Assembly (NCBI GenBank): GCA_964247055.1
Contig: OZ176052.1
Location: 310,001 to 374,000 of the forward strand
From: Paragordius varius
Taxonomy: Eukaryota > Animalia > Nematomorpha
Length of the DNA stretch: 64,000 nucleotides
Direction: 5' to 3'
Under the pieces are notes generated by a model that was not told the DNA's origin, ran no database searches, and saw nothing but the letters and a program-made list of their open reading frames with translations. Every line of letters starts with the position of its first letter. Position 1 is the first letter of the stretch. This document shows positions 5,448-53,741 of this stretch, piece after piece. Both the position numbers and the translations under genes were made by a program.

Positions 5448-5598
5448 TTCTATTCTTATCAGCCTAATACCTGATACGACCTCTAAAGAGGTCCGTGATA
5501 TTAATTTTTTTGGAGATTTGGTGAAGGCGCTCTGGCCTTGCCTATCTCTTCCCATCGGGTCAACCTGGCAGTGCAGTATCTCCAGATGTCGCCCAAAC
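5448..5598 (+). pseudogene. U2: U2 snRNA 3' half (from ~nt 39), degenerate
   Basis: ttctattcttatcagcctaatacctgatacgacctctaaagaggtcc...ttttttggag...caacctggcagtgcagtatctccag shows SLIIa/IIb, Sm site and SLIV. Confidence 0.9.
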
Positions 5599-6002
5599 AA
5601 TCATCACCAATTGAATTTTTTTAAACAAAATAGATAAAATCAGTTTTAATAATGTGTATCTATATCAAGCCACTTCTGTATATCCCAGGGATCACTAAAA
5701 CTCCAAAAAAAAACAACATTAGGGATTGAACAAACTTAAGTAAGTGATGAATTACACTATAACAAAATGATAAACATACCTGCGTGAATAACAATTAATG
5801 TTAAAATGGGTGACCAACGTAAAAAATATCACTATTGTTTACTGAGAATTACGAATTCAATGCCTAAAAAGTAAATTTTTTTAGCGTTAAAAAAACAATA
5901 AATACAAATGTTACATGAAAGGGCGTCAAGAAAATAAATAATATTAAAAAATTTAAAATAAATTTAGCAAACAAATATAAAATTTAAATTTCTTGAATGG
6001 TG

Positions 6003-6600
6003 ATCAAAGTGTTACAAAAAAAAGGATGTAGCATATCCACTTTGCCACTGTCCACAAAAGACGTCCCTTGCTGCCCTTCCATGCACCAGTCAATGGTGGT
6101 TCAGTGATAGCCGTCTAGTTACGTGGGGGTTCGGGTTGACTTCTAGGGTTTTATATATAAAACATGTATAAACTAAAATAAAGAAATATTTGATATTTTA
6201 CAGGTAAAATAAATCTTATCGACTATATCCTATATATTTATACTAATAGAATTTTATAGCATAACATTCTTAAAAATATAACGTATGTATACTCTAACTT
6301 AATTTAACCGAGTCCCTATTTATCATACTGTTACAGTATTTATCTGCTTAATACGATTTTGAATCATTATTTAATTTTGATTACTGTGTTTTGTTAATAT
6401 ATAATTCCGTTTTTAATGTTTGGATTTTTTTAGATCTTAAATTCAAATTTTCTTTTTGTAGATCATGTTAATATGCCGCATTCGTAATCATTATCTTTTA
6501 TCTATAAATTTCAATAATTTACTTTTTATAATTGCTGCATTTAAAATTCCGCATTAAGTCCTAAGATTTATCTTTGGCATACGCCTATATAAAATTAATG
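6003..6600 (+). repeat. Repeat with GC-rich head containing a tRNA-Gly-like segment (SINE-like?); second copy at 31287-32007
   Basis: gccactgtccacaaaagacgtcccttgctgcccttcc...tggtggttcagtgatag...cgggttgacttctagg and the following AT-rich tail are shared with the minus-strand copy. Confidence 0.55.
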
Positions 6601-6619
6601 TTGATCCGGCATAATTTTA

Positions 6620-6976: not shown

Positions 6977-7355
6977 TTAATCCATCCCTTTATTAAGATT
7001 AATGATCATTACAATATATTTGTATTTTATTTTTTTTGTCCACTGAGTACTTATTAAACCTTTTATAGCAATTTTAATTAGTACATTCTAATCGACATAT
7101 TTTATGATCAGTTAATTACGCCTTTTTTATTTTTTGGATTCGATCTCGTTTACAGCAAAAATTTATCCATTTATCATACTATATGCACATTTGTTTTGGC
7201 CTAATCACTCTATTGTTGGCTAATTGGTAATAGAGTGCTTGTGTTAAACAAATTTTGTTTATTAAAAATGTTATAAAAATACAAAAAAATTGTATAATTT
7301 CGATCATTTCAATGTTATATTGTTTAAAAGTTTCCGAATTGTTTTCAATGATTGT

Positions 7356-7498
7356 GTTTGCGCCACTCCTGGAGGTACTGCAATACCAAGGTGACGGGAG
7401 GGATAGGCAAGCCCAGAGCGCTTCACCAAAATCTTCAAAAAAAAATATCATGGACCTCTTTAGAGGTCGTATCAGATAATAAACTTATAAGAACATAT
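7356..7498 (-). pseudogene. U2: U2 snRNA 3' half (from nt 39)
   Basis: Minus strand reads atatgttcttataag...tctgatacgacctctaaagaggtccatg...ggtattgcagtacctccaggagtggcgcaaac. Confidence 0.9.
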
Positions 7499-9738
7499 TT
7501 TTATTTATTATATATATGTGTGATTAATTATAACATATTTTTCAATAGATTGATCAATGCTGGCTATGAAATGAAGACTTGCGAATTTAAATATAATATT
7601 TTTAATGAATTTTGAAATAAAAATATTTTACGTTAAAAAAATAGGAAAGAAAAACCCCGGACGGGATTGAAAAAAACTATTCCAAAGCAATCTTTGGTTG
7701 ATCCTGTTGGTTTGTTTCTCGCACAATTCCGTTTCCATTCGACGACTGTTGATTTGTTGAGGAATTAACCAAAGTTTCATTGCTGAGTCATAATTGATTG
7801 ATAATGATAACCATTGGTTGGGTTCTAGGTAGATGTTTCGGCAGACGCAAAGAATTGGTCGGAATCTCTTTCGGGAAGTTCCTCCATTTTTAAACCCGTA
7901 CCAGAGCCGTGATGAGTGTCGTATTGTAAAACTCATCATCAGGCTTCCGAGCCAAAAAAATAGAGGAACTGAGTGTAATATGCTTCAACTATTTGTCGTT
8001 TTTTCGTATACCATGATCCTAACCGACGACTAGCGTAAATATCTTGACTCTGTTTGAGTTATCAGATAATAAGGACATTAAAGGGGTATATTTTTCCACC
8101 TTATTTTCCAGAAGACCGCCAACCGATCATCTAAAGAACAGTTCACGTAGATGATATAGATTATCCTTAGAGTATTTAACCACTAGATCCGGTTTAAGGG
8201 GGAGGGAGGCTGGGTAGGAGTTCTCGGATATGATTTCAACGCCACAAGAAAAATGTGTTTTAATTATATTGACGATGAAATCGCCGAGCTCTCTATGCGC
8301 GGGATAATCTTAAACAATGAATAAAAATAAGGGGTAAACTTTCCAGATGACGCCCGCATCGTCGACAGGGTTATGGGAAGAACCTGGAGGCGCGTTCGTA
8401 GGAAGTAGATTTAGTCGGGCTCGATGGATTGATTGCCCGAAAAGAAATACCTGATCCGGAGGTTATGAATGAGGAGCTGGCTTTGTGGAAGAAAATTACC
8501 TGGATAGCACGGCCTTGGGAGGGACACGCGATAAGGCTGTTTAAAAACGAACAAGTATATTTAGAATAAATTGGATGAACAAGTACGCGACAGGAGAACA
8601 AGACAATATTAAACTTTCTTTTATAAAGGGCTGGGAATTGAAGTATTTGGATTGGAGGCCAAGGCATTTGGATGCCAAGCGAGATTGGTTGAAGATGTTG
8701 AAGGTTTAGATTGTTTGAACCTGGGAAAAATTCAAAGGTCTTGGATTCAAATATTGTCCTTAAAGAAATGGTGGCTAGAAGAGTAGAATAGGCGTGTTCA
8801 GAATGAACGGATCAGAGCTAGTTAGGAGCCTGAGTATAGTCTCTGTATATATCGGGAAGAAAGAATGTTTCAGAGACGCCTAGACCCTCTTTAAAGACTG
8901 GAATGTAATAGTTTGTGGAGGTTCATTGGGAAAGCGATGTGATTTTCTTTATAGTATGCAGACACCGAGCCCATACGAAATTTATGGATCAGTGTACAAA
9001 CGTTTTAAAGCATCCAGCATCTGCCTTCAGGTTGGATGAACTTTCATAAGTTGTCGGGAGGAACCACAATCCTATCTGGCTTATCATGAGTCTGGCCTTG
9101 CTGCAGAGTGGGAACCACGTGTCCATCTATCTCTATATGAGTGGATAAACTCCCTATGTAAGATAGATGTTTAATAATTTTTATTTAAACGGGGGTATTG
9201 CAAACTGGCCCAAGAAAAGAGTGGGCCACGAATGCACCATTAATCATTTTTATATGATTAAAGTCATCTGCAAGCGAGACAAGTGGTGTAATGAGTGTTG
9301 TTCAGGGAGGATATCAGAAGATTGATGACTGAATCAAAAGAAGTGGGGACAGAGGACATCCTTGGCAAGTTCCTCTTTTAAGAAAAATGAAGAAGGGCTT
9401 GCTCGTTTGAAATGCGAGTGGAGGAATTAAAGAAAAGAGTAAACAGAATTGAAAACAAATTATCAGATCTAACTATATCGCGAAGGAAATGGCGGAGGAA
9501 ATCAAAAGAAGCAGCATCGAGCCCCAGAAGGAAGAATGGGTGTCGATGATGCCGAGACAATTTGTGAATGAGAAATGTTCGAGAATTCCATTATAAAGTA
9601 TGAATCCTTTCTGATGGGGAAAACAATAATTTTAGAAAGATAGGTGGAGAGGGACTTTTAAATAATGATAGAGATATTCCGTAGCTGTTATCTAAAAGTG
9701 AAATGGGCCTAAAGTTGGCGGAATTAGCAGCGTCACCC
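7499..9738 (-). mobile_element. Utopia-like element, lineage B, 5'-truncated and degenerate
   Basis: Starts at GDAANSANFRPISL (RT); contains LIACPSQGRAI...KASSSFITSGSGISFR; the 3' UTR abuts the U2 3' half at 7498. Confidence 0.75.
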
Positions 9739-10884
9739 AACTTGTTTCGTACAATTTATTCTAATACTTGGTCGTTTTTAAACACCCTTATCGCGTGTCC
9801 TTCGCAAGGCCGTGCAATCGAAGCAGCCTCCCTACACAAAGCTAGCTCCTCATTTATTACAGCCGGATCAGGCATTTCTTTTCGAGATTTGAGATTTATC
9901 CATCGGGCCCGCCTTAACTTACTTCCAACAAACACGCGACCCGGCTCTTCGCATAACCCCTCCTGTCGGCGATGCGGGCGCCATCCTGAAACACTACCCC
10001 ATTTTTTTAACCATTGTTTAAGATATTCGCGTTCATGGAGATCTCGGCATGATTCCATCGTCACTATACTAAAAACACATTAATCTTGTGGCGCTGAAAT
10101 CATGTAAGAGAACTCCTACCCAGCCTCCCTCCCCCTGAAACCTGACTTAGTAATTAAATTCCGCGGCATTATATACATCATCGACGTGACCTGTCCTTTC
10201 GATGATCGGTTGGCGGCCTTGGCTGGAACAATAAGGTGGAAAATTATCTCTTTAATTCCCTTATTTTCTAATAACTCAAACGAAGTCAAGATACTCCCAT
10301 TGGTGGTCGGAAGTTTAGGATCATGGTACCCAAAAAACGACGAAGGTTAAAGAATATTACATCTAGTTCCTCTATTTCTCGGCTCAGAAGCCTGATGATA
10401 AGTTCAACAATACGACACTCATCACGGCTCTGGTATTAAAAATAAAGAAACTTCCCGACAGAGATATAACCTCTAACCCGGCCGTCATTTCTCCAGCCAC
10501 TGTTGAAACATGTACTTAGAACACAACCAATAGTGATCTTTTTCAATCAACATCACAAATGATACCAAAACTTAGCCCTATTACTTTGGTCAATCTTTCA
10601 ACAATACAACAATTGAGTGAAAACGAAATTGTGCGAGATCAAATCAACCAACAGGATCAAACAAAGATTATTTTGGGAGAGTTTTTTTAACCACGTCCGG
10701 GGTTTTTTTTTCCTATTTTTTTCCTCAATTGGTAGTTAATTTTTTACACGTAAAATATTTTTATGACAAAATTTATTATAAATTTTAAATATAAATTCGT
10801 AAGTCTTCATTTCATAGCCAACAATGATCAATATATTGAAAAATACATTAAAACTTATATTATACATATATTAAATATGTAAAA
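9739..10884 (+). mobile_element. Utopia-like element, lineage B, 3' portion
   Basis: RFIHRARLNLLP, CRRC...H..NHC knuckle and LPLKPDLV...IIDVTCPFD (RLE); the 3' UTR abuts the U2 3' half at 10885. Confidence 0.85.
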
Positions 10885-11036
10885 ATCTGTTCCTATAAGT
10901 TTAATATCTAATACGACCTCTAAAGAGGTCTATGATACTAAATTATTTTTTGGCAATTTTGGGGAGGCGCTCTGGGCTTGCCTATCCCTCCCCATCGGGT
11001 CAACCTGGTATTGCAGTACCTCCAGGAGTCCAAAGA
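10885..11036 (+). pseudogene. U2: U2 snRNA 3' half (from nt 39)
   Basis: atctgttcctataagtttaatatctaatacgacctctaaagaggtc...atttttttggc...cctggtattgcagtacctccagg. Confidence 0.9.
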
Positions 11037-11231
11037 CAATCATTAAAACCATTTTTAAAACCTTTTTGAAACAAATAATTTTTAAAAAATGATGATAGAA
11101 AAATGAAAAGTTTATAAGGATCATAATGTTGTGTATGTTTAAGTTTTAAACAAATCAGTTTTTATAGACTCTATAAATATCGGGCCACTTTTCTATTTAT
11201 ACCAGGATCCAAAACTCCAAAAACAAAAAAA

Positions 11232-11560
11232 TATTTTATTCCTCAATTACAATCCCAATTTAAAACAGTCTGGAATCTTCCACTAGTCGTAGGAGCATTA
11301 GGTGCATGGCACCCGAAAAATATTATTCTTAATAAACTCTGCTCATCGCTAGATGCTCAGATAATTCGCAAATAAATGGTAAGCAATACCATTTTCTATA
11401 GCTTAGAAATATGAAGATCCTTTATAATCTCAAATAATTATGTAGGAAATATAGGACCACCTTATTTTAAATAATCTATAAAATAATCAATTTATTCTCG
11501 TACTATAACAAGTATAGCATTTACATATTTGCTTCGATATCTAATCCATATAGTATTATG
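11232..11560 (+). mobile_element. Lineage A Utopia 3'-end remnant
   Basis: Translates to IPQLQSQFKTVWNLPLVVGALGAWHPK...KLCSSLDAQ, matching ORF 49497-49934. Confidence 0.7.
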
Positions 11561-12122
11561 TAATAACACACATATATATTTAACACTTTACAAACTTTCC
11601 CCTTTTTGAATTTACATTTTGGTGTAGTTTTATAACCTAGAGCTAAATTTTGTAAATAAATTACAGTTTTGAAAGTTATTTTAATTAAAATTTAATTATC
11701 AATTTTTCATCTTTTAGATAGAAAAGCTTGTATATTTATTAAGTGACTTCTAGAGATTTAAATTGGAACACCCCCAAAAGCGTATTTAAACGAACAGCTG
11801 ATATTAAAACCAAAATATATCAAGTAAATTTAGCTTGAAAGTTTTTTAAAGTTAATTATATACATTGGCCAACTATAATATACATTAATTTGCCTGTTGC
11901 ATTGGCGAATAAAAATTATAGAAAAAATGGCAGTAAAAATTGAGATGAGAATTATATACAATTTTAGATTGTAAAATTTTTTTTTATAATGCGCACCATA
12001 AAAACTAAAGCGAGCATTTTTTATTTTTGGCTTAATACTTTAAATACTTTTAAAATATTCAAATTTAAAATGGCTTTAAGACATAAAACTACCCCAAAAG
12101 GTATGGAGTGTAAAATAAATTA

Positions 12123-12232
12123 AATCTAACTTTTCAGCTTAATATCAATACGACCTATAAAGAGGTCCATATTAACCTTATTTTTTTGGAGTAGCGTTTC
12201 TGAACTTGCCTATCCATCCCCACCGAATCAAT
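12123..12232 (+). pseudogene. U2: Highly degenerate U2 3' half
   Basis: atctaacttttcagcttaatatcaatacgacctataaagaggtccat...tttttttggag; preceded by AATAAATTAA, like the lineage C 3' tail. Confidence 0.7.
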
Positions 12233-17267: not shown

Positions 17268-17320
<53 letters not shown>

Positions 17321-20438: not shown

Positions 20439-20528
20439 ATCTGCTCTTATCATCTTGATATCTGAAGCGACCATTAAAGAGATCTTATATAAAAATAAAT
20501 TTATTTTTGGAGATTTCGGGGAGATGCC
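20439..20528 (+). pseudogene. U2: Degenerate U2 3' half (from nt 39), 3'-truncated
   Basis: atctgctcttatcatcttgatatctgaagcgaccattaaagagatc...aaatttatttttggagatttcgggg. Confidence 0.8.
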
Positions 20529-20831: not shown

Positions 20832-20870
20832 ATAGAGATCGTATCAAATATTAAGCTGATAAGAAGAAAT
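20832..20870 (-). pseudogene. U2: Short U2 3'-half remnant (nt 39 to ~77)
   Basis: Minus strand ataaattca|atttcttcttatcagcttaatatttgatacgatctct has the same junction as 49364/49363. Confidence 0.75.
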
Positions 20871-21720
20871 TGAATTTATATAAATGTGTTTAAGTGTTGC
20901 CACATTATTATATATAAATGGAAGAATATGTCAAGAAAAAGGAACCAATATAAATGCTATATTTATTTGTTTAATGCTAAAATAAATTTAATGTTTGGAT
21001 GTACAGTAAAATTTGAAATTATACGGACAAAACGTAAAATATTTTTTACATTTTGCAATTTAAAACAACGAGTTATATTCAAGAAAATCAAGATTTAAAA
21101 ACTATGGTTGTCTTTTGGAAATATTTGTCTTTAAATTATTACGTTTTGTCCGTATAATTTGTTTTTTACTGTAATGTGCGTTTTTAAGTATAATCTTTTA
21201 TGAATCTGTTCCATACTTTTGAGTTATAAAAGATGGTGCTGCTTCCCATTTGTTTGGAAACTGTAGAAAATTCTTGTGCTGGTCAGATTTTGTTTGCATA
21301 AGCCATTCTTTATATATCATCATCAATATTTTTGTTTATTGTGCTTGCAGTAGGGGTAGTATATTGTTGGTATTTATCTAATTTTTTTATTACAGTGAAA
21401 ATTTTCAAAAGGACAATGCATCTAATTTAAAGCAATTACCTTTAATATATTAATTATATAAGGGTTGTTGTGTTGAGAAGGTGAGTTTTCATAAACTAAT
21501 TTGGTGTTTTTTAAAATTTCAGGCATGCTTATGCTTTTTTGTCCATTGTGGAGAGTATTGAAGGCAATGGTTAAGCTGATGGAGAGTTTCATTTGCCTTG
21601 TCACTTTATTACCAGGGGTTTTCAGGGGAGTCTAGGTGACTATTCACAGGTAACAGTTTTCGGCGATCTTTGTGAGTAAATCAGCCAGCCGGTTTTGAAA
21701 GATGTATTTTCGTCTGCATG
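20871..21720 (-). mobile_element. Lineage A Utopia 3' remnant, degenerate
   Basis: Minus-strand remnants of NETL...LNHCLQYSP and a lineage A-type 3' tail abutting U2. Confidence 0.6.
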
Positions 21721-23088: not shown

Positions 23089-23149
23089 ACTCTGAAAAAT
23101 TCGCAGTAAAATCAATAATGTTGTATATATGAAGTCAAAAAAGATAATT

Positions 23150-30821: not shown

Positions 30822-30869
<48 letters not shown>

Positions 30870-37928: not shown

Positions 37929-37966
<38 letters not shown>

Positions 37967-38880
37967 CATCAGCTTATCTTATGATAAAGGACAATGTTTG
38001 ATAATCATATTTTAACTAAAATAGGTCTTAAAACAGTATTATAGTTAAAAGATTGAGCTCTGGGATATGTAACTTCCCTAATACATGGCGGAAAAAAAGT
38101 GAAAACCTCATAAAGTGCAAATTAATGCACAATTTATAAGGTTTAGCGCTGGCAAAATCATACATAAAATTTATATATCTATATTTTGCAAATTAAAATT
38201 TCATTTTATAGCAATTATATTTTTTTTTTAACGTTAAATGCTGTTGTAGTACTTTACTCCACATCATGGTTTTATTTTTTAATTCTAAATTTATTTTACA
38301 AATAATACATATTAACATTACACCATTTTTATATTATCGCGCATTTCTTTCAGTATTCAGTTATGAAAATCAATCACTATTATCCCTATTTTTATAATAA
38401 ATTTATTGTTTCGCTAGTTTTATTTTAAATTTTTCAAGTAAGTTCATGAAATCGTTGTATTTGATTATATTGATTTTTATACGCCATAAAAAATAAGTTT
38501 TAATTTCAATTTTTCAACGGATATTAGTTGTAATTCCATTTTTATTACCACCTAATTTTATTATTCACTCAAGTATGTTTGTCATTTTGTTACCATATTT
38601 TACATGACAACTTATATTTTTTGGTCCATAATGTTATTTTTATTTTTGGAGATTTGGTTCCTGGTATAACAAAAGTGGCCTGATATTGATACACATTACT
38701 AAAATTGTTTAAAATTCTTAAACATACACCACATTTTCATAACTTTATAATATCAAATTCACAACTTTAACATGATTTTAAAAACTTTACAAATTTTTTT
38801 CTATCATAAACTTTTTAAATTTTTTTTTAAAAATATTTATTCTGTTTGAAAAAAGTTTCTAAATTGATTTTAATGATTGT

Positions 38881-39034
38881 GTTTGGGCCACTCCTGGAGG
38901 TACTGCAATACCAGGTTGACCCGATGGGGAGGGATAGGCAAGCCCAGAGCGCCTCCCCAAAATCTCCAAAAATAAATTTAATATCATGGACCTCTTTAGA
39001 GGTCGTATCAGATATTAAGCTGATAAGAACAGAT
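38881..39034 (-). pseudogene. U2: U2 snRNA 3' half (nt 39 to end)
   Basis: 154 nt nearly identical to 32534-32687 and 49210-49363, with SLIIb GACCTCTAAAGAGGTC, the Sm site and SLIV. Confidence 0.95.
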
Positions 39035-42000: not shown

Positions 42001-42594
42001 TCTGATGTTGTTGTAGTCAGGTCTGTTAGATGGCCGACTAGAAGAATTGGTGGAGACTCTTGTGGGTTCATCAGGTGTATTATCAGCAGTAGGAGGGTGA
42101 GTGAGTGACGATCTGATGTTGTTGTAGTCAGGTCTGTTAGATGGCCGACTAGAAGAATTGGTGGAGACTCTTGTGGGTTCATCAGGTGTATTATCAGCAG
42201 TAGGAGGGTGTTGATTGGTGGGGGGTAGTTGTTTGATATTCGTCTTTGTTCTCTTCATCGTACGTTTGGGTGGTAAACGGCTGTTGTTTGGGAGGATTAG
42301 ACTCATCAGTGGGATTGGATCTGCATTGGTTTGGTTATTATTGTTACGATTGGCGTGAGGACTATCTGAGATGTTTTTAGTATTACTATTGTTGTGTTCT
42401 CGCCTGATGGTATTGAGTTTTTCTTGATGGTGGATAATACGCGGATACCTGTTGTTGGGGACATCAGAATTGGTACGATTGTGGAAGTTATCATTAGGGG
42501 TGTCAACGTGGCTGTTATCTTTGTGTCCATTGGTTGTTTTGTTCACAGATAAAACCTCGTAACGGTTGCTCAAATCAATCGTTGGGTTGTTCAT
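39035..42594 (-). mobile_element. Utopia-like lineage C, left (inverted) arm: linker, RT, CCHC, RLE, 3' UTR
   Basis: ORFs 41986-42630, 40732-41937, 39743-40630 and 39309-39734 mirror the plus-strand ORFs at 44727-47736. Confidence 0.9.
41990..42210. repeat. 111-bp in-frame tandem duplication (two copies)
   Basis: gtgagtgacgatctgatg...aggagggtg starts at 41990 and 42101; the right arm has a single copy. Confidence 0.95.
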
Positions 42595-42624
42595 CTCGGC
42601 CTCTTGGCTAAGATCAAAGTGTCG
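42594..42624 (+). pseudogene. U2: U2 snRNA 5' fragment (nt 7-37)
   Basis: TCTCGGCCTCTTGGCTAAGATCAAAGTGTcG; identical to 53705-53735 (minus) except at nt 36. Confidence 0.9.
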
Positions 42625-43703
42625 AAGCAAATTCTTTATATTACATCCATCTATTATATTATTAAATTCAAATTATCATATCTCATTTAATCCAATCACT
42701 ATACATATTACATCATCGATCATTATCTTAATCATCATCTAATTCCCTTCGGCTATATCGCATAAGCTACACACTTTTCGCGCGGTCTCGTGACCCATCC
42801 TTCCGCCCTTACTTCTGTGTTTATTCTTTTGAAACTTTGTTATTCCTTCGAAACTTTGTATATATCCTTGGAAAATTTTTATTAAATATTATTCTTTACA
42901 TTCATTAGTTTGATTATATCCGTCTTAATTCAATTCATAAATTTTATTAATTCTCAAAACTTTAATTTGGAAAACTTACCAATTTTATCTTTAACCCTAC
43001 TCCTATCACATTCTGTCAACTCCCTCTAAAAACAGCATATTTGCGGAAATTTTAACGAATTCATTATTCCACTTTTTTGCATCGGATCTCTGATTGTCAA
43101 TCTTCTGCATCTCATACAATCCGGATTAATTAATCCTCGCAACTTTAACTTGGAAAGCCTACCAATTTTATCTTTAACCTCTCACCTAATACATTTTCTC
43201 AACTCTCCAAAAGCAAACTCGCGGAAATCTTAACTAATTTACTTGAAAATTTATCCCTGGTTGTCACACCTCTGTTTTATCTGTCTCCTATACAATCCGG
43301 AAAATTTCTTCGTGAAAATAACAACACACTCAAGCCCGAAATCTAATGAATTCAAAATTTTATTTACACCACCCATCACTTGGTTCTTTAATAAGCTCAC
43401 TTTTATATGGTATACATAACGCTATTTAATCTATGGTAAATGATATTTTATTAATTTTCCTTACTTTTTTTTATTATAATTCCTACTTAATCACCTTTGT
43501 TATTGATTTTTATATATACCCATCATCTGTACACACTTTATTTTGAAATCTCTAATTATACATATCGCTCATTTTTATTTATTTTTTTTTAATGGATATT
43601 TTATACTTTATCACATATCTCCCCCTTTTTTTGATATTCTTACCCCGACTCCTTCCCACAACATACATATTTATCTTAATGTCATTTTAATTTAATTACT
43701 CAA

Positions 43704-45227
43704 ATGTCCAAACCGGAAAGAGACAATAATTCTTTATTTATTTCATTCCCGATCCCCCAAACGTTTTTTTGCTCGGAAACAGGATGCCCTGCATCTTTCT
43801 CGGGCCATGAATGGTACATCTCGCGTCACTCTCTTCTGCCCCATTTAAGAATAAATCATAATATTTTTATTACAAAAGTTTTCAAATTCTGCTCGCTTTG
43901 TAGACAGTATATATCTTCTAAACCGTCTCGCCACCCCTGTCTTAAGGATAGAGTTATGTTAAAAAATTCTAATAACCCTTTCAAATGCCGTCTCTGTCCT
44001 GAATCCTTCCCCAGCAATCAAGGTTTGGCAAACCATACTTACATGCATAAAAAGGCTTCTCTCGGTTTTAACAGCTACCTTAATCGACAATCCCAGCAGC
44101 AACCTTGGCGTATCCACCCAGTCTCTCCACTCATATCCCGTGCCCCTTTTCACTGGTCACCCCCACTGAGGCGGTCCCCCGTTCTTATACCATGGAGTCC
44201 CCATCCTCCGAACGCCAGACCAACTTACGCTCAGGCCTTAAATTCACAACTTCCAACAACATCTAATCTCCAGCTCTACTCTCCAAATTCACTTTCAGTC
44301 ACTCCGACTAATTCATCGCACTTGGTTTCACATGCTCATCACACCCCTCCCAGCCAACGAATATCTCACAATCTAGGTCACCTACCTTCCTCACGCAGTC
44401 AATATCCTCCACTTGTCACTCGCAATCCCCAATCCTCAAAAAATTTTACTCCAATCCAACGAGTTCCAATAGCATCCTTTAATAATCTCATGATGACCCC
44501 ACCAAGAAATCCACGAAATATTCCCTCACTCATGAGTCTATCACTTCCACCTCTCTACAAGTATCGCGAATCTCCATACATGTCATCACCCGTCAAAAAC
44601 CATCCATCAAGCTGTCCTCCTAAACCTTGTCTCATGACATCAGCTCCCAGTTTACACAATCAATCCTCACCCAAAACTCCACCGGCTAAAAGAGCTAGAC
44701 ACTCTCCAGCTTGGTTAAAACGGCGCATGAACAACTTAACCTTGATTGATTTGAGCAACCGTTACGAGGTTTTATCTGTGAACAAAACAACCAATGGACA
44801 CAAAGATAACAGCCACGTTGACACCCCTAATGATAACTTCCACAATCGTACCAATTCTGATGTCCCCAACAACAGGTATCCGCGTATTATCCACCATCAA
44901 GAAAAACTCAATACCATCAGGCGAGAACACAACAATAGTAATACTAAAAACATCTCAGATAGTCCTCACGCCAATCGTAACAATAATAACCAAACCAATG
45001 CAGATCCAATCCCACTGATGAGTCTAATCCTCCCAAACAACAGCCGTTTACCACCCAAACGTACGATGAAGAGAACAAAGACGAATATCAAACAACTACC
45101 CCCCACCAATCAACACCCTCCTACTGCTGATAATACACCTGATGAACCCACAAGAGTCTCCACCAATTCTTCTAGTCGGCCATCTAACAGACCTGACTAC
45201 AACAACATCAGATCGTCACTCACTTAA
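43704..45227 (+). CDS. Lineage C polyprotein N-terminus: three zinc fingers plus a long P/S/N/T-rich linker; ends at an in-frame TAA
   Basis: CSETGC...HLRINH, CSLC...HPC and CRLC...HTYMH; the next ORF (45276) continues in the same frame. Confidence 0.8.
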   Translation: MSKPERDNNSLFISFPIPQTFFCSETGCPASFSGHEWYISRHSLLPHLRINHNIFITKVFKFCSLCRQYISSKPSRHPCLKDRVMLKNSNNPFKCRLCPESFPSNQGLANHTYMHKKASLGFNSYLNRQSQQQPWRIHPVSPLISRAPFHWSPPLRRSPVLIPWSPHPPNARPTYAQALNSQLPTTSNLQLYSPNSLSVTPTNSSHLVSHAHHTPPSQRISHNLGHLPSSRSQYPPLVTRNPQSSKNFTPIQRVPIASFNNLMMTPPRNPRNIPSLMSLSLPPLYKYRESPYMSSPVKNHPSSCPPKPCLMTSAPSLHNQSSPKTPPAKRARHSPAWLKRRMNNLTLIDLSNRYEVLSVNKTTNGHKDNSHVDTPNDNFHNRTNSDVPNNRYPRIIHHQEKLNTIRREHNNSNTKNISDSPHANRNNNNQTNADPIPLMSLILPNNSRLPPKRTMKRTKTNIKQLPPTNQHPPTADNTPDEPTRVSTNSSSRPSNRPDYNNIRSSLT

Positions 45228-45275
45228 TTAATTGAACGTCTTTCCTCCGTCACAAATGCCCAGGAATTCAACTCT

Positions 45276-46481
45276 GTGTACGACGAACTAATCTTTGAAG
45301 CAAGAGTCAGTCTCAAACTCGAAAACCCTATATCCCATGGCATGCCCCAACTTAATCTCCGCCGCTTGTATAATAAAAATAAAAAGAAAGCCATCCGCTC
45401 CATAATTGATCCCAATCCATCTAGGTGCAGTGCTTCCTTAAATGATGTTTTTTCCTTTTTTAAAAACCGGTTTGGCCCCTCTGATTATACCCCTGATTCT
45501 ATACCCAATATCACTCCCCCTCCAACTATGCCATTTCCAGAATTCTCTAAAGAGTTAATAAGTAGCTCTCTCAACGCCTGCTTAAATTCTACGCCCGGCC
45601 CTGACCGTATGTCCGCCTCTCATTGGCGCCTTATAGACCCCAACTTCCTGATTATTTCCAAGGTCTTTGAAACATGCCTTCTACTCCAAACCGTCCCCAA
45701 AGCATGGCTTCAATCTTTTTCCATCTTAATTCATAAAAAAGGCGACACTTCCGACCCCTCCAATTTTCGCCCCATCGCCATTTCTAATATAATTTATCGA
45801 ATCTTTGCTAAAATTATCTATAAATTCCTCAGCCACCATGTAGCCCTCCACAATCTCATCGCCCCCCAACAAAAAGGGTCCTTCGACGGCGTGTTGGAAC
45901 ATAATTATTACATTTCCAACCGCTTGTCGAAGGCCCGTACAGCGAACCACCAGACCATCTTTCTATGGCTGGACGTTTCCGCCGTCTTCGACTCGATTCC
46001 CCTGCCTGTCTGCACCCAAATTTTAACGTCCCTTGGCCTGCCCCCACCCCTTGAAAGCCTTCTAAATTTTATTTTACTTACTTCTTCTACCCAATTTTTA
46101 ATCGATAAAAACCTTACCGACCCCATCCCCTATCTTAAAGGAATCAAGCAGGGGTGCCCCCTTTCCGGCCTAATCTTTAATTTGTGTATTAACCCCATTA
46201 TCATAGCCCTAAACAATCGACCCCTCACCTCCTTGGCCTTCGCTGACGACCTAACTATCATCACTGATAGCCCCGACTCTCTGAAAGGCGCAATTGCCCT
46301 TACCCACTCCTTCCTATCTTCTATTGGCATTAAAATTAACCCATCAAAGTCCCGAATCCTTAATTACGAACCCCACCCCAACGGGTTGCGCCCCTTCATT
46401 TATCTATTGACGACCACCCTATCCCATGCCTCCTCGATGGTGAATCCCATGATTTTCTGGGAAAACCTGTTGGGTTCCTGA
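45276..46481 (+). CDS. Lineage C reverse transcriptase (frameshifted near its end)
   Basis: TPGPD, KKGDTSDPSNFRPIAI, WLDVSAVFDSI, KQGCPLS and LAFADD. Confidence 0.9.
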   Translation: MYDELIFEARVSLKLENPISHGMPQLNLRRLYNKNKKKAIRSIIDPNPSRCSASLNDVFSFFKNRFGPSDYTPDSIPNITPPPTMPFPEFSKELISSSLNACLNSTPGPDRMSASHWRLIDPNFLIISKVFETCLLLQTVPKAWLQSFSILIHKKGDTSDPSNFRPIAISNIIYRIFAKIIYKFLSHHVALHNLIAPQQKGSFDGVLEHNYYISNRLSKARTANHQTIFLWLDVSAVFDSIPLPVCTQILTSLGLPPPLESLLNFILLTSSTQFLIDKNLTDPIPYLKGIKQGCPLSGLIFNLCINPIIIALNNRPLTSLAFADDLTIITDSPDSLKGAIALTHSFLSSIGIKINPSKSRILNYEPHPNGLRPFIYLLTTTLSHASSMVNPMIFWENLLGS

Positions 46482-46582
46482 TAGCTTCAGACAAACTTTC
46501 AAACTTTAACCTTTTAATTGACAAAATTATATCATCTTCCCTGACTCCATGGCAAAAATGCGACGCCTTAAAACTTTTTATT

Positions 46583-47467
46583 ATGCCAACCACCCATCAC
46601 AAACTTCGTCCGGGATCGGTACTAAAATCCGACCTTTCCATCGACACTCACCTTCGCGCAAACCTTAAATCATTGACTTCACTTCCCCAAGGTGCAGCGA
46701 CTGCTTACTTTTATATCGACACAAATTCCGGGGGACTAGGTTTCAATCGCCTTTCTTCCCTATGCGATATCTATAAAATAGATTCCACATACAAAATCCT
46801 AACTAGTCCCGACCCCCTTATTGCAGAAATGGCAAAAGAGGAACTTAAACTCACGGTTAGCCAGCGCTTTAAAACTCCTTCTCCTAATGCAGCTGACCTA
46901 TCCGAATTCCTATCCGGCGTTTCCAACCTGCCCGCATCTGGCGTTTCCAATCTTTTTTCAATATCCAGACTGGCCTCTTCGCGTCTTCATATAAAATGGG
47001 TTTTTACTGATAATCTTATCTTCATCGAAGGCTCAAACTTTCGCATCTACCCCAACTCCCGGAAAGCCATCGTTAAATCCATTTCCTCCCAAATAAAAAG
47101 TGAAGACCTAAAAGAAATCCTTAACTCACCCAGCCAAGGTAAAGTCCTTGACGCTGTCCACCATCACAAAGCCAGTTCCCATTTCCTTTCTTCTGGTCTT
47201 TATACATCCTTTAGCGATTGGAATTTCATTCACCGTGCCCGACTTAACCTACTCCCAATAAACTGTAGGCCAGGCTCACAAAAAAACCCTTCCTGTCGGC
47301 GATGTGGTAAGTTTCCAGAGACCCTCCCCCATATCCTTAACCACTGCCTCCAATATTCCCAATCGTGGAGATTCCGCCATAATCGAATTCTAACCCTCCT
47401 CAAAAATAACTTAAAATACGGTTTTGAAATTTTATTTGAAGACGAATTTGTGCGCCCCTTCCCCTAA
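46583..47467 (+). CDS. Lineage C thumb plus CCHC knuckle
   Basis: YFYIDTNSGGLG, FIHRARLNLL and CRRCGKFPETLPHILNHC. Confidence 0.85.
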   Translation: MPTTHHKLRPGSVLKSDLSIDTHLRANLKSLTSLPQGAATAYFYIDTNSGGLGFNRLSSLCDIYKIDSTYKILTSPDPLIAEMAKEELKLTVSQRFKTPSPNAADLSEFLSGVSNLPASGVSNLFSISRLASSRLHIKWVFTDNLIFIEGSNFRIYPNSRKAIVKSISSQIKSEDLKEILNSPSQGKVLDAVHHHKASSHFLSSGLYTSFSDWNFIHRARLNLLPINCRPGSQKNPSCRRCGKFPETLPHILNHCLQYSQSWRFRHNRILTLLKNNLKYGFEILFEDEFVRPFP

Positions 47468-47475
47468 AGCCTGAC

Positions 47476-47736
47476 TTGGTATTAAAATCTTCTAATGCTT
47501 TATATATTATCGACGCCAGTGTCCCTTTTGAAAACCAGTTTGCTAGTCTGACCCGTTCCCATGAAGCGAAAATATCAAAATACTCTCCCCTAATACCCTT
47601 TTTCGAAAAAGAAAACGATACTGTCGAAGTTTTACCGTTAATTGTCGGAACCCTTGGGGCTTGGTATCCTCCTAACGACCTTGTTCAAAAAAAATATGCC
47701 GTGCGAACGATATTCCGCGACACATATTTTACCTAA
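47476..47736 (+). CDS. Lineage C restriction-like endonuclease fragment
   Basis: (K)PDL...YIIDASVPFE...KISKY...LPLIVGTLGAW. Confidence 0.8.
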   Translation: MVLKSSNALYIIDASVPFENQFASLTRSHEAKISKYSPLIPFFEKENDTVEVLPLIVGTLGAWYPPNDLVQKKYAVRTIFRDTYFT

Positions 47737-49209
47737 TCATGAAGACAAAAGAATTTATTCTAAATTCTGATGTGATAGAAATGTTCAGCATGATCGAATT
47801 ATAGAAAAAGTATATTAATGTCTTAAAGCGTTCAGTTTTCTTAATGCAAAATAGCTTGAAGTACCCATCAACAAAATTTTGCAAAATTATAATTTTAAAA
47901 ATGTATGCGTTTTTTAATTTTTAGCTAATTAGCATATATTTTGAATATTTTATACAGCAGCATGTTTGCGTTTATAAGAAACTCCCATTTACCTAATTCC
48001 AAAAATGAGACTTTCGGAGTTCACATCAAAAAATTAAATGCCTATAATATTTTGCATTTTATTAGTTTATTATATATTTTAGTGATATGTTTTGGAAGCA
48101 TTTATCTTTCATAAAAAAATTTTTTTAGCAATATTTTTAGCGAATTTTGCCATTTTATGACCTGAAACTCTTGCCATAAAAGTGTAAACCATCTTAAACA
48201 CGTGTAAATCCTAAAACCAACCGTTCCTGATACATTATTCTATCGGAATATATAAAAAATAAAAATACTTTCTTTTGAAGACGAAATTACAGGCGATATA
48301 TATATTTCATCAGCTTATCTTATAATACAGGACAATGTTTGATTTAATTTTTTAACTAAAATAGTTTTTAAAACATTATAGTTAAAAGATTGAGCTCTGG
48401 GATATGTAACGTCCCTTATACATCGCGGACAAAAAAGTTAAAACGTCATAAGTTCAAATTTAATTTATAAGGTTTAAATGCGCTGACAAAATTAACCAAA
48501 AATATATAAATCTATATTTAACAAAATTAAATATTATTTTATGGCAATTATATATATTTTAAACGTTAAATGCTGTTGTGGTACTTTACTCCACATCATG
48601 ATTTTATTTTTATTTTTTAATTCTAAATTTATTTTACAAATAATACATATTTTCAACACCTTATACCATTTTTTTATCATCGCGCATTTCTTTCAATATT
48701 TAATTATTTAAATCAATCACTATTATCCCTATTTTTATAATAAATTTATTGTTTCGCTAGATTTATTAAATTTATCAAGTAAGTTCATGAGATACATCGT
48801 TGTAATATTTGTTTATATTTATTTTTAAACCCCATAAAAATTTAATTTCAATTTTTCTACGAATATTATTTGCATTTTATTTTTTAGTACTACTTAATTA
48901 TTATTCACTCAAGTATGTTTGTCATTTTGTTACCATATTTAACATCACAACTTATATTTTTTGGTCCATAATGTTATTTTTATTTTTGGAGATTTGGTTC
49001 GGTTCCTGGTATAAGTACAATAGTGGCCTGATATCGATACATATTACTAAAATTGTTTAAACATTTTTAACATATACCCTCTTTTCATTACTCTATAATA
49101 TCAAATTCACAACCTTATCATTATTTTATAAACTTTTCAATTTTTTTATAAAATTTGTTCAAATTATCTGTTTAAATAAAAAGGTTTCTAAATTGATTTT
49201 AATGATTGT
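47720..49209. repeat. Third copy of the U2 downstream flank (paralog of ~36770-38880, without the MITE)
   Basis: Begins acacatattttacctaatcatgaagac as at ~29750 and ~36770; carries the empty TTAA site. Confidence 0.85.
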
Positions 49210-49363
49210 GTTTGGGCCACTCCTGGAGGTACTGCAATACCAGGTTGACCCGATGGGGAGGGATAGGCAAGCCCAGAGCGCCTCTCCAAAATCTCCAAAA
49301 ATAAATTTAATATCATGGACCTCTTTAGAGGTCGTATCAGATATTAAGCTGATAAGAACAGAT
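49210..49363 (-). pseudogene. U2: U2 snRNA 3' half (nt 39 to end), right junction of the full-length element
   Basis: taaataaattca|ATCTGTTCTTATCAGCTTAATATCTGATACG...CCAGGAGTGGCCCAAAC. Confidence 0.95.
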
Positions 49364-49496
49364 TGAATTTATTTAAATATATATTTGTGTGACATCACAT
49401 TATATTATATAATTATAGAAAAAGAAGATTGCAAACACGAAAATACTGCAAATTGAGTGTATGTTATAATACTGAAAATAAATTCTTTATATAATT

Positions 49497-49934
49497 TTAA
49501 GATTTTTTGATAAAAGGGGGTGGTGTATTACCTACATAGTCATTTGAGATAAAAGAACTCCATATTTCAGAACTATAGAATATAGTAGTGCTCACCATTT
49601 GCTTGCGAATTCTCTGTGCATCTATGGATGAGCAAAGTTTATTAAGTATGATATCATTTTTGGGGTACCATGCACCTAAAGCTCCGACGACTAGTGGGAG
49701 AATTTGGACCGTTTTATATTGGAATTCTAATTGAGGAATGAGAGCTTCATATTTATCAATTTTTTTGTTATAAGCATCTGTCAGGGACTGATATCTGTTT
49801 TCGAAGGGACAGACAGCATCTACTATGTAGCAGTTGCCTTTGTTAATTAGGATTAAGTCTGGTTTTAATGGTAAGTGTGTTATGTAAGTGTTTTCATGTT
49901 GTATTATGGTGTCGCTTGTTAAATGATTTTTCAA
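49497..49934 (-). CDS. RLE endonuclease domain of the lineage A element
   Basis: LKPDLILINKGNCYIVDAVCPFE...KKIDKYE...LPLVVGALGAW; separated from the main ORF by a 1-nt loss (~50005) and TGG>TAA (~49965). Confidence 0.88.
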   Translation of the reverse strand: MKNHLTSDTIIQHENTYITHLPLKPDLILINKGNCYIVDAVCPFENRYQSLTDAYNKKIDKYEALIPQLEFQYKTVQILPLVVGALGAWYPKNDIILNKLCSSIDAQRIRKQMVSTTIFYSSEIWSSFISNDYVGNTPPPFIKKS

Positions 49935-49993
49935 TATGTCTAAACAAGCGTTGTGTCGCCTAATTTAGTGTGGAGAGTATCGAAGGCAATGAT

Positions 49994-52984
49994 TTAATAC
50001 ATGGGGAGAGTTTCATTTGCCTTCCCACATCTCCTGCACAGTGGATTTTTGGCTGATCCTGGACGGCTATTCACAGGGAGCAGATTAAGGCGTGCCTTAT
50101 GAATAAAGCGCCAGCATTTAAAAGATGTATATGTGCCCGAAAGGGTAAAGTGGGATGAGGCTGGATGTTGTTGTATGGCTTCAATCACTTTACCCTGATT
50201 CGGGCAATCAATTAGGGATTTTAGGTGGTTTTTCGCATTTCTTTTGCATATTGAGGATACAATAATTTTTCTGGCATTGGGGTCAATGTTTACCGATTGC
50301 CCTTTTATAAAAGGTATCGAATTTTGAAATTCCCATGCCAGGTCAAGCCTTTTAGAAGCTTGCCTGGCTTTGGTGTATAAAGATGAACATCCAGTAGTTT
50401 TGATCTGTATTTGATTATTGAAGTATTGATTTAAGTCAGTATCATTTGTGGCGGTTGAGTTGGTATGTTTAGATATTGTATGTTTAAGATGGATTTTGGC
50501 TTGGTCTGCTAATTTTTCATCGGGAGAGGTGAGTAGTTTGTATGTAGAGTCAATCAAATATGCATCGTGTAGAATGCCAAGCTGGGGTAACCCGAGACCG
50601 CCAGCTTTTGTGGGTGCGTAGAAATAATTGGTATTGGCACTGGCGGGTAAGGCTGTAATTTTTTTGATAAGGGATCGCACTTTATTATCAGATTTATTTA
50701 GATCGGTTTTTTTCAAGGCTCCCATTCTGAGAGAGTGGATAATGGTAGGAAAAATGAATGTTTTGAGACAGTCTAATTTCTGCCATGGTGCGAGATTGGA
50801 TTGTATTATGTTGTCGACCAGATTATCCAGTTCTTGTGTATTTTTGGGGGGTGCTAAGGGCGAAATAGGTTTGCCCAGGTATGATATGGATTTACCTTCA
50901 CAGATTTGCTCGAGGAGTTGATTGTGTATAGTGATTGATGGATTTGGCGAGTTAATAGTAAGAAGGGCTGATTTGCTGACATTTATTGTGATGTTATGTG
51001 CTTGAAGCCAATGCTCTGCAGTGAGGATGTTTTTTTGGAGAGCATCGGCTTGGTGCGCGATGATTACCAAATCATCGGCATATGCAAGGGATGTTGAAGA
51101 TGTGTTTAGTAACTCCAGGAGTGGATTGATGGACAGGTTAAATAAAGTTCCGGAGACTGGGCAGCCCTGTTTAATGCCCTTTTGAAATGCAATCGGGTCT
51201 GTCAGTCCGCCTTGTGCATAGATTTGTGTTTTAGAACTGGATATATTTTGGATGATGATCTTTTTTAGTGTTGTATTTATTGGAAGATGACAAACTGTAT
51301 TAATAAGTAGGTTATGCGGAATTGAATCAAACGCCTTATTTATATCGAGAAAGGCTATGAAAAGTTTCTGCTTATCTTGTTTGGCTCTCTTAATTGTTTG
51401 TTCAATGACATAGTTATGCTCTAATACCCCATCAAAGGGCATAAAGCCTTTTTGATTAGGGTGAATTAGAGATTTGTCAATTATGGATTTTAATAGAGTT
51501 TGGTTAACATATTTAAAAAAGATTCTATATAGTGTGTTGGAAATAGTTATTGGTCTAAAATTTTTTATTTCATTAATGTTACCGGATTTGTGTATTAGGA
51601 TTGTTTTGGAAGAGAGCCAGTCATCAGGTAATGTCCCTAGCTGAATTATTTTATCAAATATTGTTTTTATGATTGGTGAATGTGTCTCTATTTTTAGCCA
51701 GGTGGTAGGTGTAATACCGTTTGGGCCTGGTGAGGTTGATTTAGACCTTAGGAGCTGTTTGGTCACTTCATTATATGATATTGAAAATGGGGGAAATGGT
51801 AAAGGTTGTGGTTGAGGTAGATCGGATGGTATAGAGGTATCTGTGAATAAATTTTGAAAGTAGGGAAAAATAATATCTTTATCGATCGGACAATAAGTAG
51901 GATTGCCGTCTATAATGAGACGTGTTGCTCGCTTTGGATTCAATTTATATAGTCTTTGTATCTTAGAGGGATTATTTGGTATGTTATGAGGTGTGGTAGA
52001 TGGTGTTTTAAGTGGTTGAATTTTGTAGTGTGTTTGAATCATAATTATTAATTTGTTATATATAGCATTAAATTCAGTAGAGTTGTTACAATTCTCTATG
52101 TCCTGTTTGATATGTAAAAGTGCGTCAGAGAATGGATCGGTATTTGTTTTCGATGTGGTATAGGTATTTACAGGCTCAATGTTATCTGATGTATTATTGT
52201 TCATGTCGGTTGTAACTATTTCAGTTTCGGAATGTTCACCTGGTTCAGTCCAGTCTTTGGATGTAGTAGGAAGTAAATCGATATTTGGTTCGTTTATGGT
52301 AGATGTATTTTGCTTTGAGGTGATGATAGAGTTTGATTCATTAATGGTGTAGGGGGATTCATTTTCCGTTTCTGATGGTTCGCTTAGATCAATCCAGTCT
52401 CTAGAAGTGGTAGGGAGTGGACTGTTATTATTGGATATTTTTCGCCTTTTTTGATTATGAGTTTCTTCTTTTTGGATAATGGGTGACCAAGGGATTATTT
52501 GGGGAGTTTGTCGTAATAATGGGGATCGATGTAATCTGGGGGCTCTGTGGATTCTTGGAGAAATGGTTGTTAACTTCCAATTTGGGGGTTTATTAAATTT
52601 ATTTTCATTAGAGAGGTAAGTCTTAAATCCAAGAGTATGCTTTTTGTGAGTAAAAGTGTGATTGTTAAGCCCTTGTTTTGTTGTAAATGTTTGATTACAT
52701 AGAGTACATTTTATAGGATTGGTTTCTGGTAATATCATTTTATTTTTAAGACAAGGGTGTCGCGAGGGTTTACTTTGAATATATTGTTTACATATTGCAC
52801 AAAATTTAATGATATGTTTGATTGATATATTGTGTATGTTTTGGATATGCCTTTGGAGAGATATTCTAGAGAGGTACCATTCATGCCCAGCAAAGGAGGA
52901 GTGACAATCAGGCTCGGGACAGTGGAATGTTTGTGATAATGGGAATGATATAAATAGAGTGTCATTGTCTCTTGTAAGTTTCAT
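49994..52984 (-). CDS. Lineage A polyprotein (996 aa): three zinc fingers, RT, thumb, start of CCHC
   Basis: CPEPDC...HIQNIH, CAIC...HPC, CTLC...HTFTH; SPGPNG, NFRPITI, QKGFMPFDGVLEHN, FLDINKAFDSI, KQGCPVSG, LAYADD and CRRCG. Confidence 0.92.
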   Translation of the reverse strand: MKLTRDNDTLFISFPLSQTFHCPEPDCHSSFAGHEWYLSRISLQRHIQNIHNISIKHIIKFCAICKQYIQSKPSRHPCLKNKMILPETNPIKCTLCNQTFTTKQGLNNHTFTHKKHTLGFKTYLSNENKFNKPPNWKLTTISPRIHRAPRLHRSPLLRQTPQIIPWSPIIQKEETHNQKRRKISNNNSPLPTTSRDWIDLSEPSETENESPYTINESNSIITSKQNTSTINEPNIDLLPTTSKDWTEPGEHSETEIVTTDMNNNTSDNIEPVNTYTTSKTNTDPFSDALLHIKQDIENCNNSTEFNAIYNKLIIMIQTHYKIQPLKTPSTTPHNIPNNPSKIQRLYKLNPKRATRLIIDGNPTYCPIDKDIIFPYFQNLFTDTSIPSDLPQPQPLPFPPFSISYNEVTKQLLRSKSTSPGPNGITPTTWLKIETHSPIIKTIFDKIIQLGTLPDDWLSSKTILIHKSGNINEIKNFRPITISNTLYRIFFKYVNQTLLKSIIDKSLIHPNQKGFMPFDGVLEHNYVIEQTIKRAKQDKQKLFIAFLDINKAFDSIPHNLLINTVCHLPINTTLKKIIIQNISSSKTQIYAQGGLTDPIAFQKGIKQGCPVSGTLFNLSINPLLELLNTSSTSLAYADDLVIIAHQADALQKNILTAEHWLQAHNITINVSKSALLTINSPNPSITIHNQLLEQICEGKSISYLGKPISPLAPPKNTQELDNLVDNIIQSNLAPWQKLDCLKTFIFPTIIHSLRMGALKKTDLNKSDNKVRSLIKKITALPASANTNYFYAPTKAGGLGLPQLGILHDAYLIDSTYKLLTSPDEKLADQAKIHLKHTISKHTNSTATNDTDLNQYFNNQIQIKTTGCSSLYTKARQASKRLDLAWEFQNSIPFIKGQSVNIDPNARKIIVSSICKRNAKNHLKSLIDCPNQGKVIEAIQQHPASSHFTLSGTYTSFKCWRFIHKARLNLLPVNSRPGSAKNPLCRRCGKANETLPMY

Positions 52985-53704
52985 GATAAATGGTCAGGAT
53001 ATTTGGATGTTCGCTTGTTTAAAAAAAAATTTGGAGTTATAAGAGTAATAAATGCAGGGAGTGGAGAGAAAATAAGTTGGATGGATATAAAACGAATGTA
53101 ATATATTAAATGGATGGTAAAAGGCGAGAAAAATAGTGTAAATGCCGGAAAAAAAAATTAATTGCCAGAAGAGAAAAAAAAATGTAAATGCCCAGAATAT
53201 AAATATAGTGTATCTGCGAAATGTAAGAGGGCTAAGGATCAAAGATACATTAGAATAAGGATAGCGAATATGAATGGGATAAGGAGACCGGGTATAATTT
53301 GAATATAGGATATAAATAGGATAAAGGATATTAGCGGGATAAGGATAACGGATATATGGTAAAGATGGATATATAATAAGGATAACTGATATGAATAGCA
53401 TAAGGGATAATACTGGGATAGGGCTAATTGAGATAAATAGGATATGGGATATATGGTAAAGATGGATATAAATGTGATAAGGATAATTGATATGAATAGC
53501 ATATGGGATATACTGGGATATGGATAACGGATATAAATGGGATAAGGATAACGGATATATGATATAAATTGGAAGAATAGGCCAAATAAGTTATGTAATT
53601 ATAAAGGGATAATGGGATGAATATATGATAGGATAAAAAGGATATTATAGGGATAGTTAATTGTATTTTTTAAATATGAAGTGGAATAATATAAAAGGAA
53701 GCTC

Positions 53705-53741
53705 CTACACTTTGATCTTAGCCAAGAGGCCGAGAACCGAT
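53705..53741 (-). pseudogene. U2: U2 snRNA 5' fragment (nt 1-37), left junction of the full-length element
   Basis: ATCGGTTCTCGGCCTCTTGGCTAAGATCAAAGTGTAG|gagcttcc. Confidence 0.95.

Follow-up and report, generated by a model that had tools for sequence, protein, structure and literature searches.

U2 gene halves and the elements beside them

The window analysed here is the whole stretch of 64,000 nucleotides (nt) from the nematomorph Paragordius varius (contig OZ176052.1, positions 310,001 to 374,000), and all positions below are counted within it. About 50 kb of the window hold broken copies of the gene for U2 small nuclear RNA (snRNA) together with the remains of retrotransposons without long terminal repeats (non-LTR) that lie against them. 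BLASTN with the best copy as the query (38878-39034, minus strand) finds nine U2 3' halves, and Rfam and pattern matching find exactly two U2 5' halves:

5448..5604, plus strand: U2 3' half after a family A 3' end; Rfam 64.6 bits, BLASTN 87%, query start 2
7353..7498, minus strand: U2 3' half after a family C 3' end; Rfam 62.9 bits, BLASTN 86.6%, query start 1
10885..11043, plus strand: U2 3' half after a family C 3' end; Rfam 88.3 bits, BLASTN 91%
12123..12231, plus strand: degenerate U2 3' half; BLASTN 76% over 113 nt, start offset and blurred
20439..20523, plus strand: U2 3' half with 85 nt of U2 only, after family D; BLASTN 81%
20833..20870, minus strand: U2 3' half with 38 nt of U2 only, after an A/B-related element; convergent with the copy at 20439
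32531..32687, minus strand: U2 3' half after a 200-nt family B 3' end; Rfam 107.9 bits, BLASTN 97.5%
38878..39034, minus strand: U2 3' half after the family B minus-strand copy; Rfam 124.6 bits, BLASTN 100% (the query)
49207..49363, minus strand: U2 3' half of the sole complete insertion, family A; Rfam 114.6 bits, BLASTN 99.4%
42588..42625, plus strand: U2 5' half upstream of the family B plus copy, ending ...AAAGTGT, with the first ~7 nt lost; Rfam 29.1 bits
53704..53741, minus strand: U2 5' half (nt 1-37) directly upstream of the full-length family A element, ending ...AAAGTGTAG; Rfam 37.9 bits

The 3' halves have a common start. In an Rfam scan of the whole window the gathering score of RF00004 is reached at six sites, with two further matches below it. 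In the strong alignments the first ~38 model positions are unrelated AT-rich sequence, and the U2 match is firm from AUCUGUUCUU, at about model position 39. The BLASTN matches begin at query position 1 in seven of the nine halves, at position 2 in one and at position 8 in the copy at 12123. An earlier note, made from the letters of this DNA, had claimed nine 3' halves that all begin at the ATCTG of nt 39; Rfam and BLASTN agree with this, the start at 12123 being blurred. A 29-nt U2 pattern has four matches in the window vs none in shuffled sequence. The U2 parts of the halves differ by 0-24%, and ~45 nt of identical downstream flank are common to six of them, which indicates that these halves are gene copies in their genomic context.

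Eight of the nine 3' halves directly follow the AT-rich terminus of a recognisable non-LTR element on the same strand; the junction at 5448 (plus strand), for example, reads ...aaaatca followed at once by TTCTA. This part of the earlier claim stands. The ninth half, at 12123, had been described as having an A-rich tail only, and here a correction is needed: it is preceded by ...aaaataaatta, which is similar to the 3' termini of the other elements, and it probably adjoins a decayed element terminus as well.

The two 5' halves stop 1-3 nt short of the point at which the 3' halves start. The complete insertion lacks the T that joins ...GTGTAG to ATCTG..., so that both halves sum to a U2 gene minus one T, and the junction falls within the GUAGUA box with which U2 binds the branch point. 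The sequence bears out what had been noted for these halves, namely that they end at about nt 37, that T38 is missing at the complete insertion and that the cut lies inside the GUAGUA box. U2 sequence running across the junction has no match anywhere in the window even when three mismatches are permitted. All U2 copies of the window are disrupted, as had been claimed, and it is a reasonable assumption that functional U2 would be supplied from elsewhere.

The coding remnants of the elements were mapped with a hidden Markov model (HMM) profile built from family A and its two closest relatives, and broken ORFs were searched as separate pieces. In the following lines, ORF stands for open reading frame, RT for reverse transcriptase and UTR for untranslated region:

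49364..53703, minus strand: family A, full length, 4340 nt; ORF of 996 amino acids at 49994-52984 with C2H2 zinc fingers and RT
3918..5447, plus strand: family A, 5'-truncated, starting near amino acid 691; BLASTN 88.8% to the full copy, HMM matches
1780..3919, minus strand: inverted partner of the preceding copy, head at amino acid 465, abutting the plus copy without a spacer; 3' tip and U2 flank gone
11238..11590, plus strand: family A fragment with endonuclease end and 3' UTR; BLASTN 80%, 3' flank not U2
39035..42594, minus strand: family B, 5'-truncated, 3' end intact; ORF in three pieces
42626..47719, plus strand: family B with 5' end, last ~455 nt missing; ORF in three pieces, with breaks as in the minus copy
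32688..32893, minus strand: family B 3' end fragment, 89% identical to 39035-39247
20871..23088, minus strand: element related to A (3' part) and to B (RT, 80% nucleotide identity), ending at the U2 half at 20870
23658..24412, plus strand: B-like RT fragment, inverted partner of 22430-23088 (84% inverted repeat); Pfam RVT_1 6.5e-29
7499..9746, minus strand: family C, heavily decayed, inner end approximate; tblastn 29%, weak collinear HMM matches
9709..10884, plus strand: family C with CCHC knuckle, endonuclease and 3' UTR; HMM 8.6e-27, tblastn matches to the relatives P0001 and P0002
18164..20438, plus strand: family D, very decayed, RT-bearing, ending at the U2 half at 20439; tblastn and HMM matches

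The domain content can be read most fully in the full-length family A element, whose ORF contains RVT_1 (Pfam, 2.5e-33) and zf-C2H2. The ORF ends inside the CCHC knuckle, and the remainder of the knuckle and the endonuclease follow in another frame with one further stop; the C-terminal motifs are CRRC...H..NHC and then an RHN / KPDLIL / IVD / K endonuclease region. The insertion that had been called complete is thus full-length and not intact, given the frameshift and the stop ahead of the endonuclease. The 5' UTR of this copy carries degenerate tandem repeats of 42-59 nt (53308-53559). The C-terminal profile positions of family A (CCHC and endonuclease) are also matched by families B and C. 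The family A fragment at 11238-11590 is the product of a deletion or else an off-target copy.

The elements belong to at least four lineages (A, B, C and D), all deeply diverged. Across the RT they are only ~26-38% identical (A vs B-like 38%, D vs B ~26%), and local protein matches give 24-49%. All element copies in the window are dead and carry frameshifts and stops, and the term "graveyard" that had been used for the locus is apt. A different broken RT lies at 60982-62076 (plus strand), with RVT_1 and DUF6451; it is ~24% identical to family A and does not adjoin any U2 piece.

Number, age and surroundings of the insertions

Some of the disrupted units have been multiplied by duplication. In a self-comparison of the window the units 27277-32698 and 34355-39045 are 93.7% identical, family B terminus included, which indicates that the U2 halves at 32687 and 39034 derive from one insertion that was later duplicated in tandem. 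The halves at 7498 and 10885 have private substitutions in common and lie in a 77% inverted duplication, in which 7337-8584 is the partner of the 10885 region. In family B the plus copy is a 99.5% inverted repeat of 39490-42594. The minus copy has retained the 3' end with a U2 3' half and the plus copy the 5' end with a U2 5' half, and the two look like one complete insertion that was rearranged afterwards. The minus-strand copy alone contains a perfect 111-bp tandem duplication (41989-42210), which is absent from its 99.5% identical partner.

Counted in this way, the nine halves go back to some six or seven independent insertions, in which four lineages or more took part. Their ages differ along the window: to judge from U2 identity, the copies on the left (1-25 kb) are old (76-91%) and those on the right (32-54 kb) young (97.5-100%). 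A reading in which all nine halves are copies of one or two insertions, multiplied by segmental duplication or by collapsed or expanded assembly, can draw on the tandem duplication at 32687/39034, on the inverted duplication at 7498/10885 and on the family B pair, whose ORFs break at the same points; repeated insertion would then not have saturated the cluster. It is nevertheless very improbable. The halves adjoin at least four element lineages with the RT divergence given above, their U2 parts differ by up to 24%, and the downstream flanks of most copies diverge beyond ~45 nt. At least six independent insertions remain after the duplicates are removed, and the possibility of collapsed repeats of one or two loci, which had been raised earlier, becomes very improbable; duplication of some halves is confirmed.

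The arrangement of the copies has a further recurrent feature. Four adjacent head-to-head pairs of the same family occur in the window, A/A (1780-5447), C/C (7499-10884), B-like/B-like (22430-24412) and B/B (39035-47719), with identities of 77-99.5%. In the A pair the longer minus copy abuts the shorter plus copy without a spacer; the C pair is maybe alike, on weak evidence. The breaks of the family A copy and of the B-related copy at 20871-23088 lie no more than a few bases from codon 465, where the RT domain starts, and in all two or three longer copies of different families break at about this codon. Head-to-head pairs are also present in the unrelated, termite-associated contigs L038, L048 and L054. 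Four of the 12 adjacencies are head-to-head vs three expected, and orientation alone is not beyond chance.

The pairs could be a by-product of integration and not of ordinary rearrangement: once the first strand has been synthesised, the cDNA end would turn back on itself or change template, so that the element was copied in reverse together with its U2 3' half. We regard this origin as unlikely; if it were true, Utopia-type elements, the class to which the window elements are assigned below, would generate palindromes that help to destroy snRNA gene arrays. Ordinary inverted duplication in repeat-rich DNA may have given rise to the pairs, and misassembly may account for the 99.5% identical family B pair only. 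Three other origins were rejected. Twin priming does not fit pairs in which both arms carry the element's own 3' end. In a nested insertion into a pseudo-target the sequence beside the break would be an element 3' end, and it is the reverse complement of the partner's head. Had both cleaved strands served as primers (two-sided priming), the minus arm would be flanked on its outer side by a U2 5' half, and it is a 3' half. A likeness of the coding sequence at the common break to the U2 target was looked for by eye, and it is too slight to be asserted. Only for the recurrent inverted pairs, among the features of the window, was no published account found in the literature consulted.

Just outside the cluster, one ORF contains a homeodomain (57895-58176, minus strand; 4.9e-13) and another a C1 phorbol-ester-binding domain (59494-59826, plus strand; 1.1e-13). 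These are probably host exons or pieces of pseudogenes. Weak matches to mir-1277 on both strands at 17254-17330 were set aside as a low-complexity artefact of an (AT)27 run.

Relatives of the elements

Elements of the Utopia type insert into U2 genes (Kojima and Jurka 2015, PMC4640811), and they are the first candidates with which the window families can be compared. A word-indexed protein search returned P0001 (251 bits) and P0002 (207 bits) as the closest relatives of family A, the best being 30% identical. A second word search, made with an alignment of A, P0001 and P0002, gave no further close relatives and none with a name. After each of these two proteins, on contigs L001 and L002, come U2 3' halves at the site used in the window. 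L001 also has a U2 5' half ending GTGTAGT ahead of a truncated copy and two split U2 copies in tandem, and L002 has an intact U2 upstream.

Among metagenome contigs, 71 relatives were recovered with the alignment. In 22 of them the contig extends 1.3 kb or more beyond the CCHC region, and 15 of these 22 have a U2 3' half 0.6-1.3 kb downstream on the same strand; Rfam confirms U2 on 15 of the metagenomic loci. The insertion site is the same in L001, L002, 24 metagenome loci and the rows of S1 Fig of PMC4640811. One of these contigs, L054, has three split U2 copies and no intact one. Among the relative loci fetched, the best U2 match is 76% identical to the U2 of the window; a 26-nt string of the window U2 has no match in the metagenome contigs, and the 996-amino-acid protein of family A has no database record. 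The U2 of the window looks insect-like, and its string CAGCTTAATATCTGATAC is also found in the ant and beetle rows of S1 Fig (PMC4640811). In five loci (L014, L015, L022, L023 and L040) the 5' flank runs through ...TCTGTTCTTATCAG and the 3' flank restarts at TCTGTTCTTATCAG, a 14-bp target-site duplication. Such a duplication in some relatives from freshwater metagenomes, compared with a loss of 1-3 nt in the window, suggests that top-strand cleavage varies within the clade. Split U2 genes of this kind also occur in mixed small-RNA arrays, at L022 4603-7307 and L047 1800-6651, together with U1, tRNA, U4, U5 and 5S, and in L047 also with SRP RNA and U3.

A maximum-likelihood RT tree was built with IQ-TREE, without named Utopia, NeSL, R2 and R4 references and with the relatives labelled by what flanks them; stops inside the family D piece were replaced by X. 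Window families A, B, B-like and D form one clade with P0001 and P0002 (ultrafast bootstrap 95, SH-aLRT 99), separate from another group that resembles restriction-like endonuclease (RLE) elements and from the long interspersed nuclear elements with an apurinic-type endonuclease. Family D sits on a long branch within the clade and is placed with less certainty. Four members of the next RLE-like group (L003-L006) have no Rfam RNA in their flanks. Since their architecture and their U2 target correspond to the published definition of Utopia (PMC4640811), which Kojima and Jurka count in the NeSL clade, the window elements can be identified as Utopia-type. They are RLE non-LTR retrotransposons, and their domains, junctions and U2-inserted relatives agree with the earlier assignment to the known Utopia site in U2. 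Utopia targeting of U2 is, as had been said, established knowledge, first described in 2015 (PMC4640811).

It is very unlikely that the elements belong to another U2-targeting or RLE lineage, such as Keno or an offshoot of the R2 clade that gained U2 specificity independently. R2 proteins are indeed the best matches among solved structures: in a search of the PDB they come first at 153 bits (5.6e-44), with R2Bm at 103 and L1 ORF2p at ~75, and the tree holds no named Utopia reference. The U2-inserted relatives, however, score far above R2 and form a supported clade with the window families, and both architecture and target fit Utopia. Keno is excluded by the Pfam scan, in which no Exo_endo_phos (apurinic-type endonuclease) domain was found, and by the presence of a CCHC and PD-(D/E)xK module. 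Pfam detects no Myb domain in the 996-amino-acid ORF, though an R2-type Myb may escape Pfam and the PDB alignment to R2 covers residues 340-822 only. Absence of Myb sets Utopia apart from R2, which this domain marks (PMC13580325).

Origin of the cluster and comparison with known systems

The window very probably contains a decayed cluster of U2 gene copies, each of which was cut at one fixed site by Utopia-type elements and which was later duplicated and decayed. To the directly observed junction positions, domain content, kinship with U2-inserted elements, duplications and decay, an inferred course of events can be added, its mechanism being taken from the family and from its R2 relatives. 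The N-terminal zinc fingers of the single element protein would recognise U2 DNA, the RLE would nick the bottom strand at the U2 site, and the freed 3' OH would act as primer, so that the element RNA would be reverse-transcribed starting exactly at its 3' end. Priming at a fixed nick from that end would make all 3' junctions identical. Joining at the 5' end would be imprecise, with 1-3 nt lost at the two full-length copies and, elsewhere, the element truncated at its 5' end and the U2 5' half lost. Tandem and inverted duplications would then have multiplied some of the disrupted units, and all copies would have gained frameshifts and stops. Identical 3' and ragged 5' junctions are the product expected of target-primed reverse transcription from a fixed bottom-strand nick, a process that is established for R2 and has been proposed for Utopia (PMC4640811).

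That the U2 3' halves were instead carried along by the elements (3' transduction through read-through transcripts), with copies free to land at any site, and that the region was never a U2 gene cluster is extremely improbable: 3' halves do outnumber 5' halves by 9:2 and each lies on the 3' side of an element, but the complete insertion has both U2 halves, together a gene minus a single base, relatives elsewhere have U2 on both sides, some with the 14-bp duplication that only insertion into U2 produces, a downstream spacer of 0.5-1.5 kb is common to three units, and in published cases the 5' half is normally lost when the element integrates (PMC4640811). The reading as a decayed, Utopia-cut U2 cluster also has points that weigh against it. 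Placement in the clade depends on target labels and bit scores, in a tree without named references. Family D and the element before 12123 are too decayed to be classified on their own. No copy is intact, and past activity is suggested by the near-identity of the youngest halves (97.5-100%) and by the nearly open 996-amino-acid ORF. These families may insert at sites other than U2 as well: their flanks are known from this window only, and one family A fragment (11238-11590) has no U2 after it.

As a picture of how a site-specific parasite ends in an essential gene family of low copy number, the window is clean and unusually complete: no target in the 50 kb is left unused, and several old lineages lie side by side, all of them dead. 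It bears on the question of Kojima and Jurka, how several Utopia lineages can persist in so few targets, and gives no answer to it. The new families enlarge the inventory of RLE elements that is mined for tools for site-specific insertion, and none of the copies here is intact.

NeSL-1 of nematodes belongs to the same clade in the published tree and has the same type of endonuclease as the window elements. It differs in having a Ulp1-like cysteine protease domain and a spliced-leader (SL) gene as its target, neither of which is seen in the window: the Pfam scan gave no protease domain, and the Rfam scan of the window gave no SL RNA match. Keno uses the same site in U2 but its endonuclease, at the N-terminus, is apurinic/apyrimidinic-like, whereas the window elements have an RLE and no Exo_endo_phos. 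R2 shares with the window elements its enzyme architecture and presumably its target-primed reverse transcription; it also has a multicopy RNA gene as its target, and the units with insertions are dead. Its target is 28S rDNA, in contrast to U2 in the window, and the copy number of U2 is far below that of rDNA. The Rfam scan of the window found no rRNA match, as would accompany an R2-type insertion in 28S.

The closest parallel is with Utopia itself, whose listed hosts include arthropods (PMC4640811). U2 arrays holding several Utopia families have already been described (Kojima and Jurka 2015, PMC4640811), and disrupted and intact U2 genes stand at 41:7 in Phytophthora infestans and 77:15 in Nasonia vitripennis (PMC4640811). 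The earlier note had taken a saturated 50-kb cluster to be the unusual part, which does not hold: PMC4640811 reports the same, and the unrelated contigs L001 and L054 look alike. The window differs from published Utopia in that its best relative is 30% identical, no intact U2 is present in 50 kb, all elements are dead and head-to-head pairs of the same family are prominent. In published Utopia the 3' flank starts at nt 39 and U2 5' halves are missing (PMC4640811). Utopia and the window elements each have one ORF that encodes N-terminal zinc fingers, an RT, a CCHC finger and an RLE (a module seen in pieces in the window). In both, the 3' junction is precise at nt 39 (ATCTG/TCTG), the 5' junction varies and the U2 5' half is often lost. 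They are also alike in having several lineages per U2 array and more disrupted than intact genes, and arthropod families of Utopia, like those of the window, lack a target-site duplication. The window families are new, deeply diverged members of the already known Utopia type.

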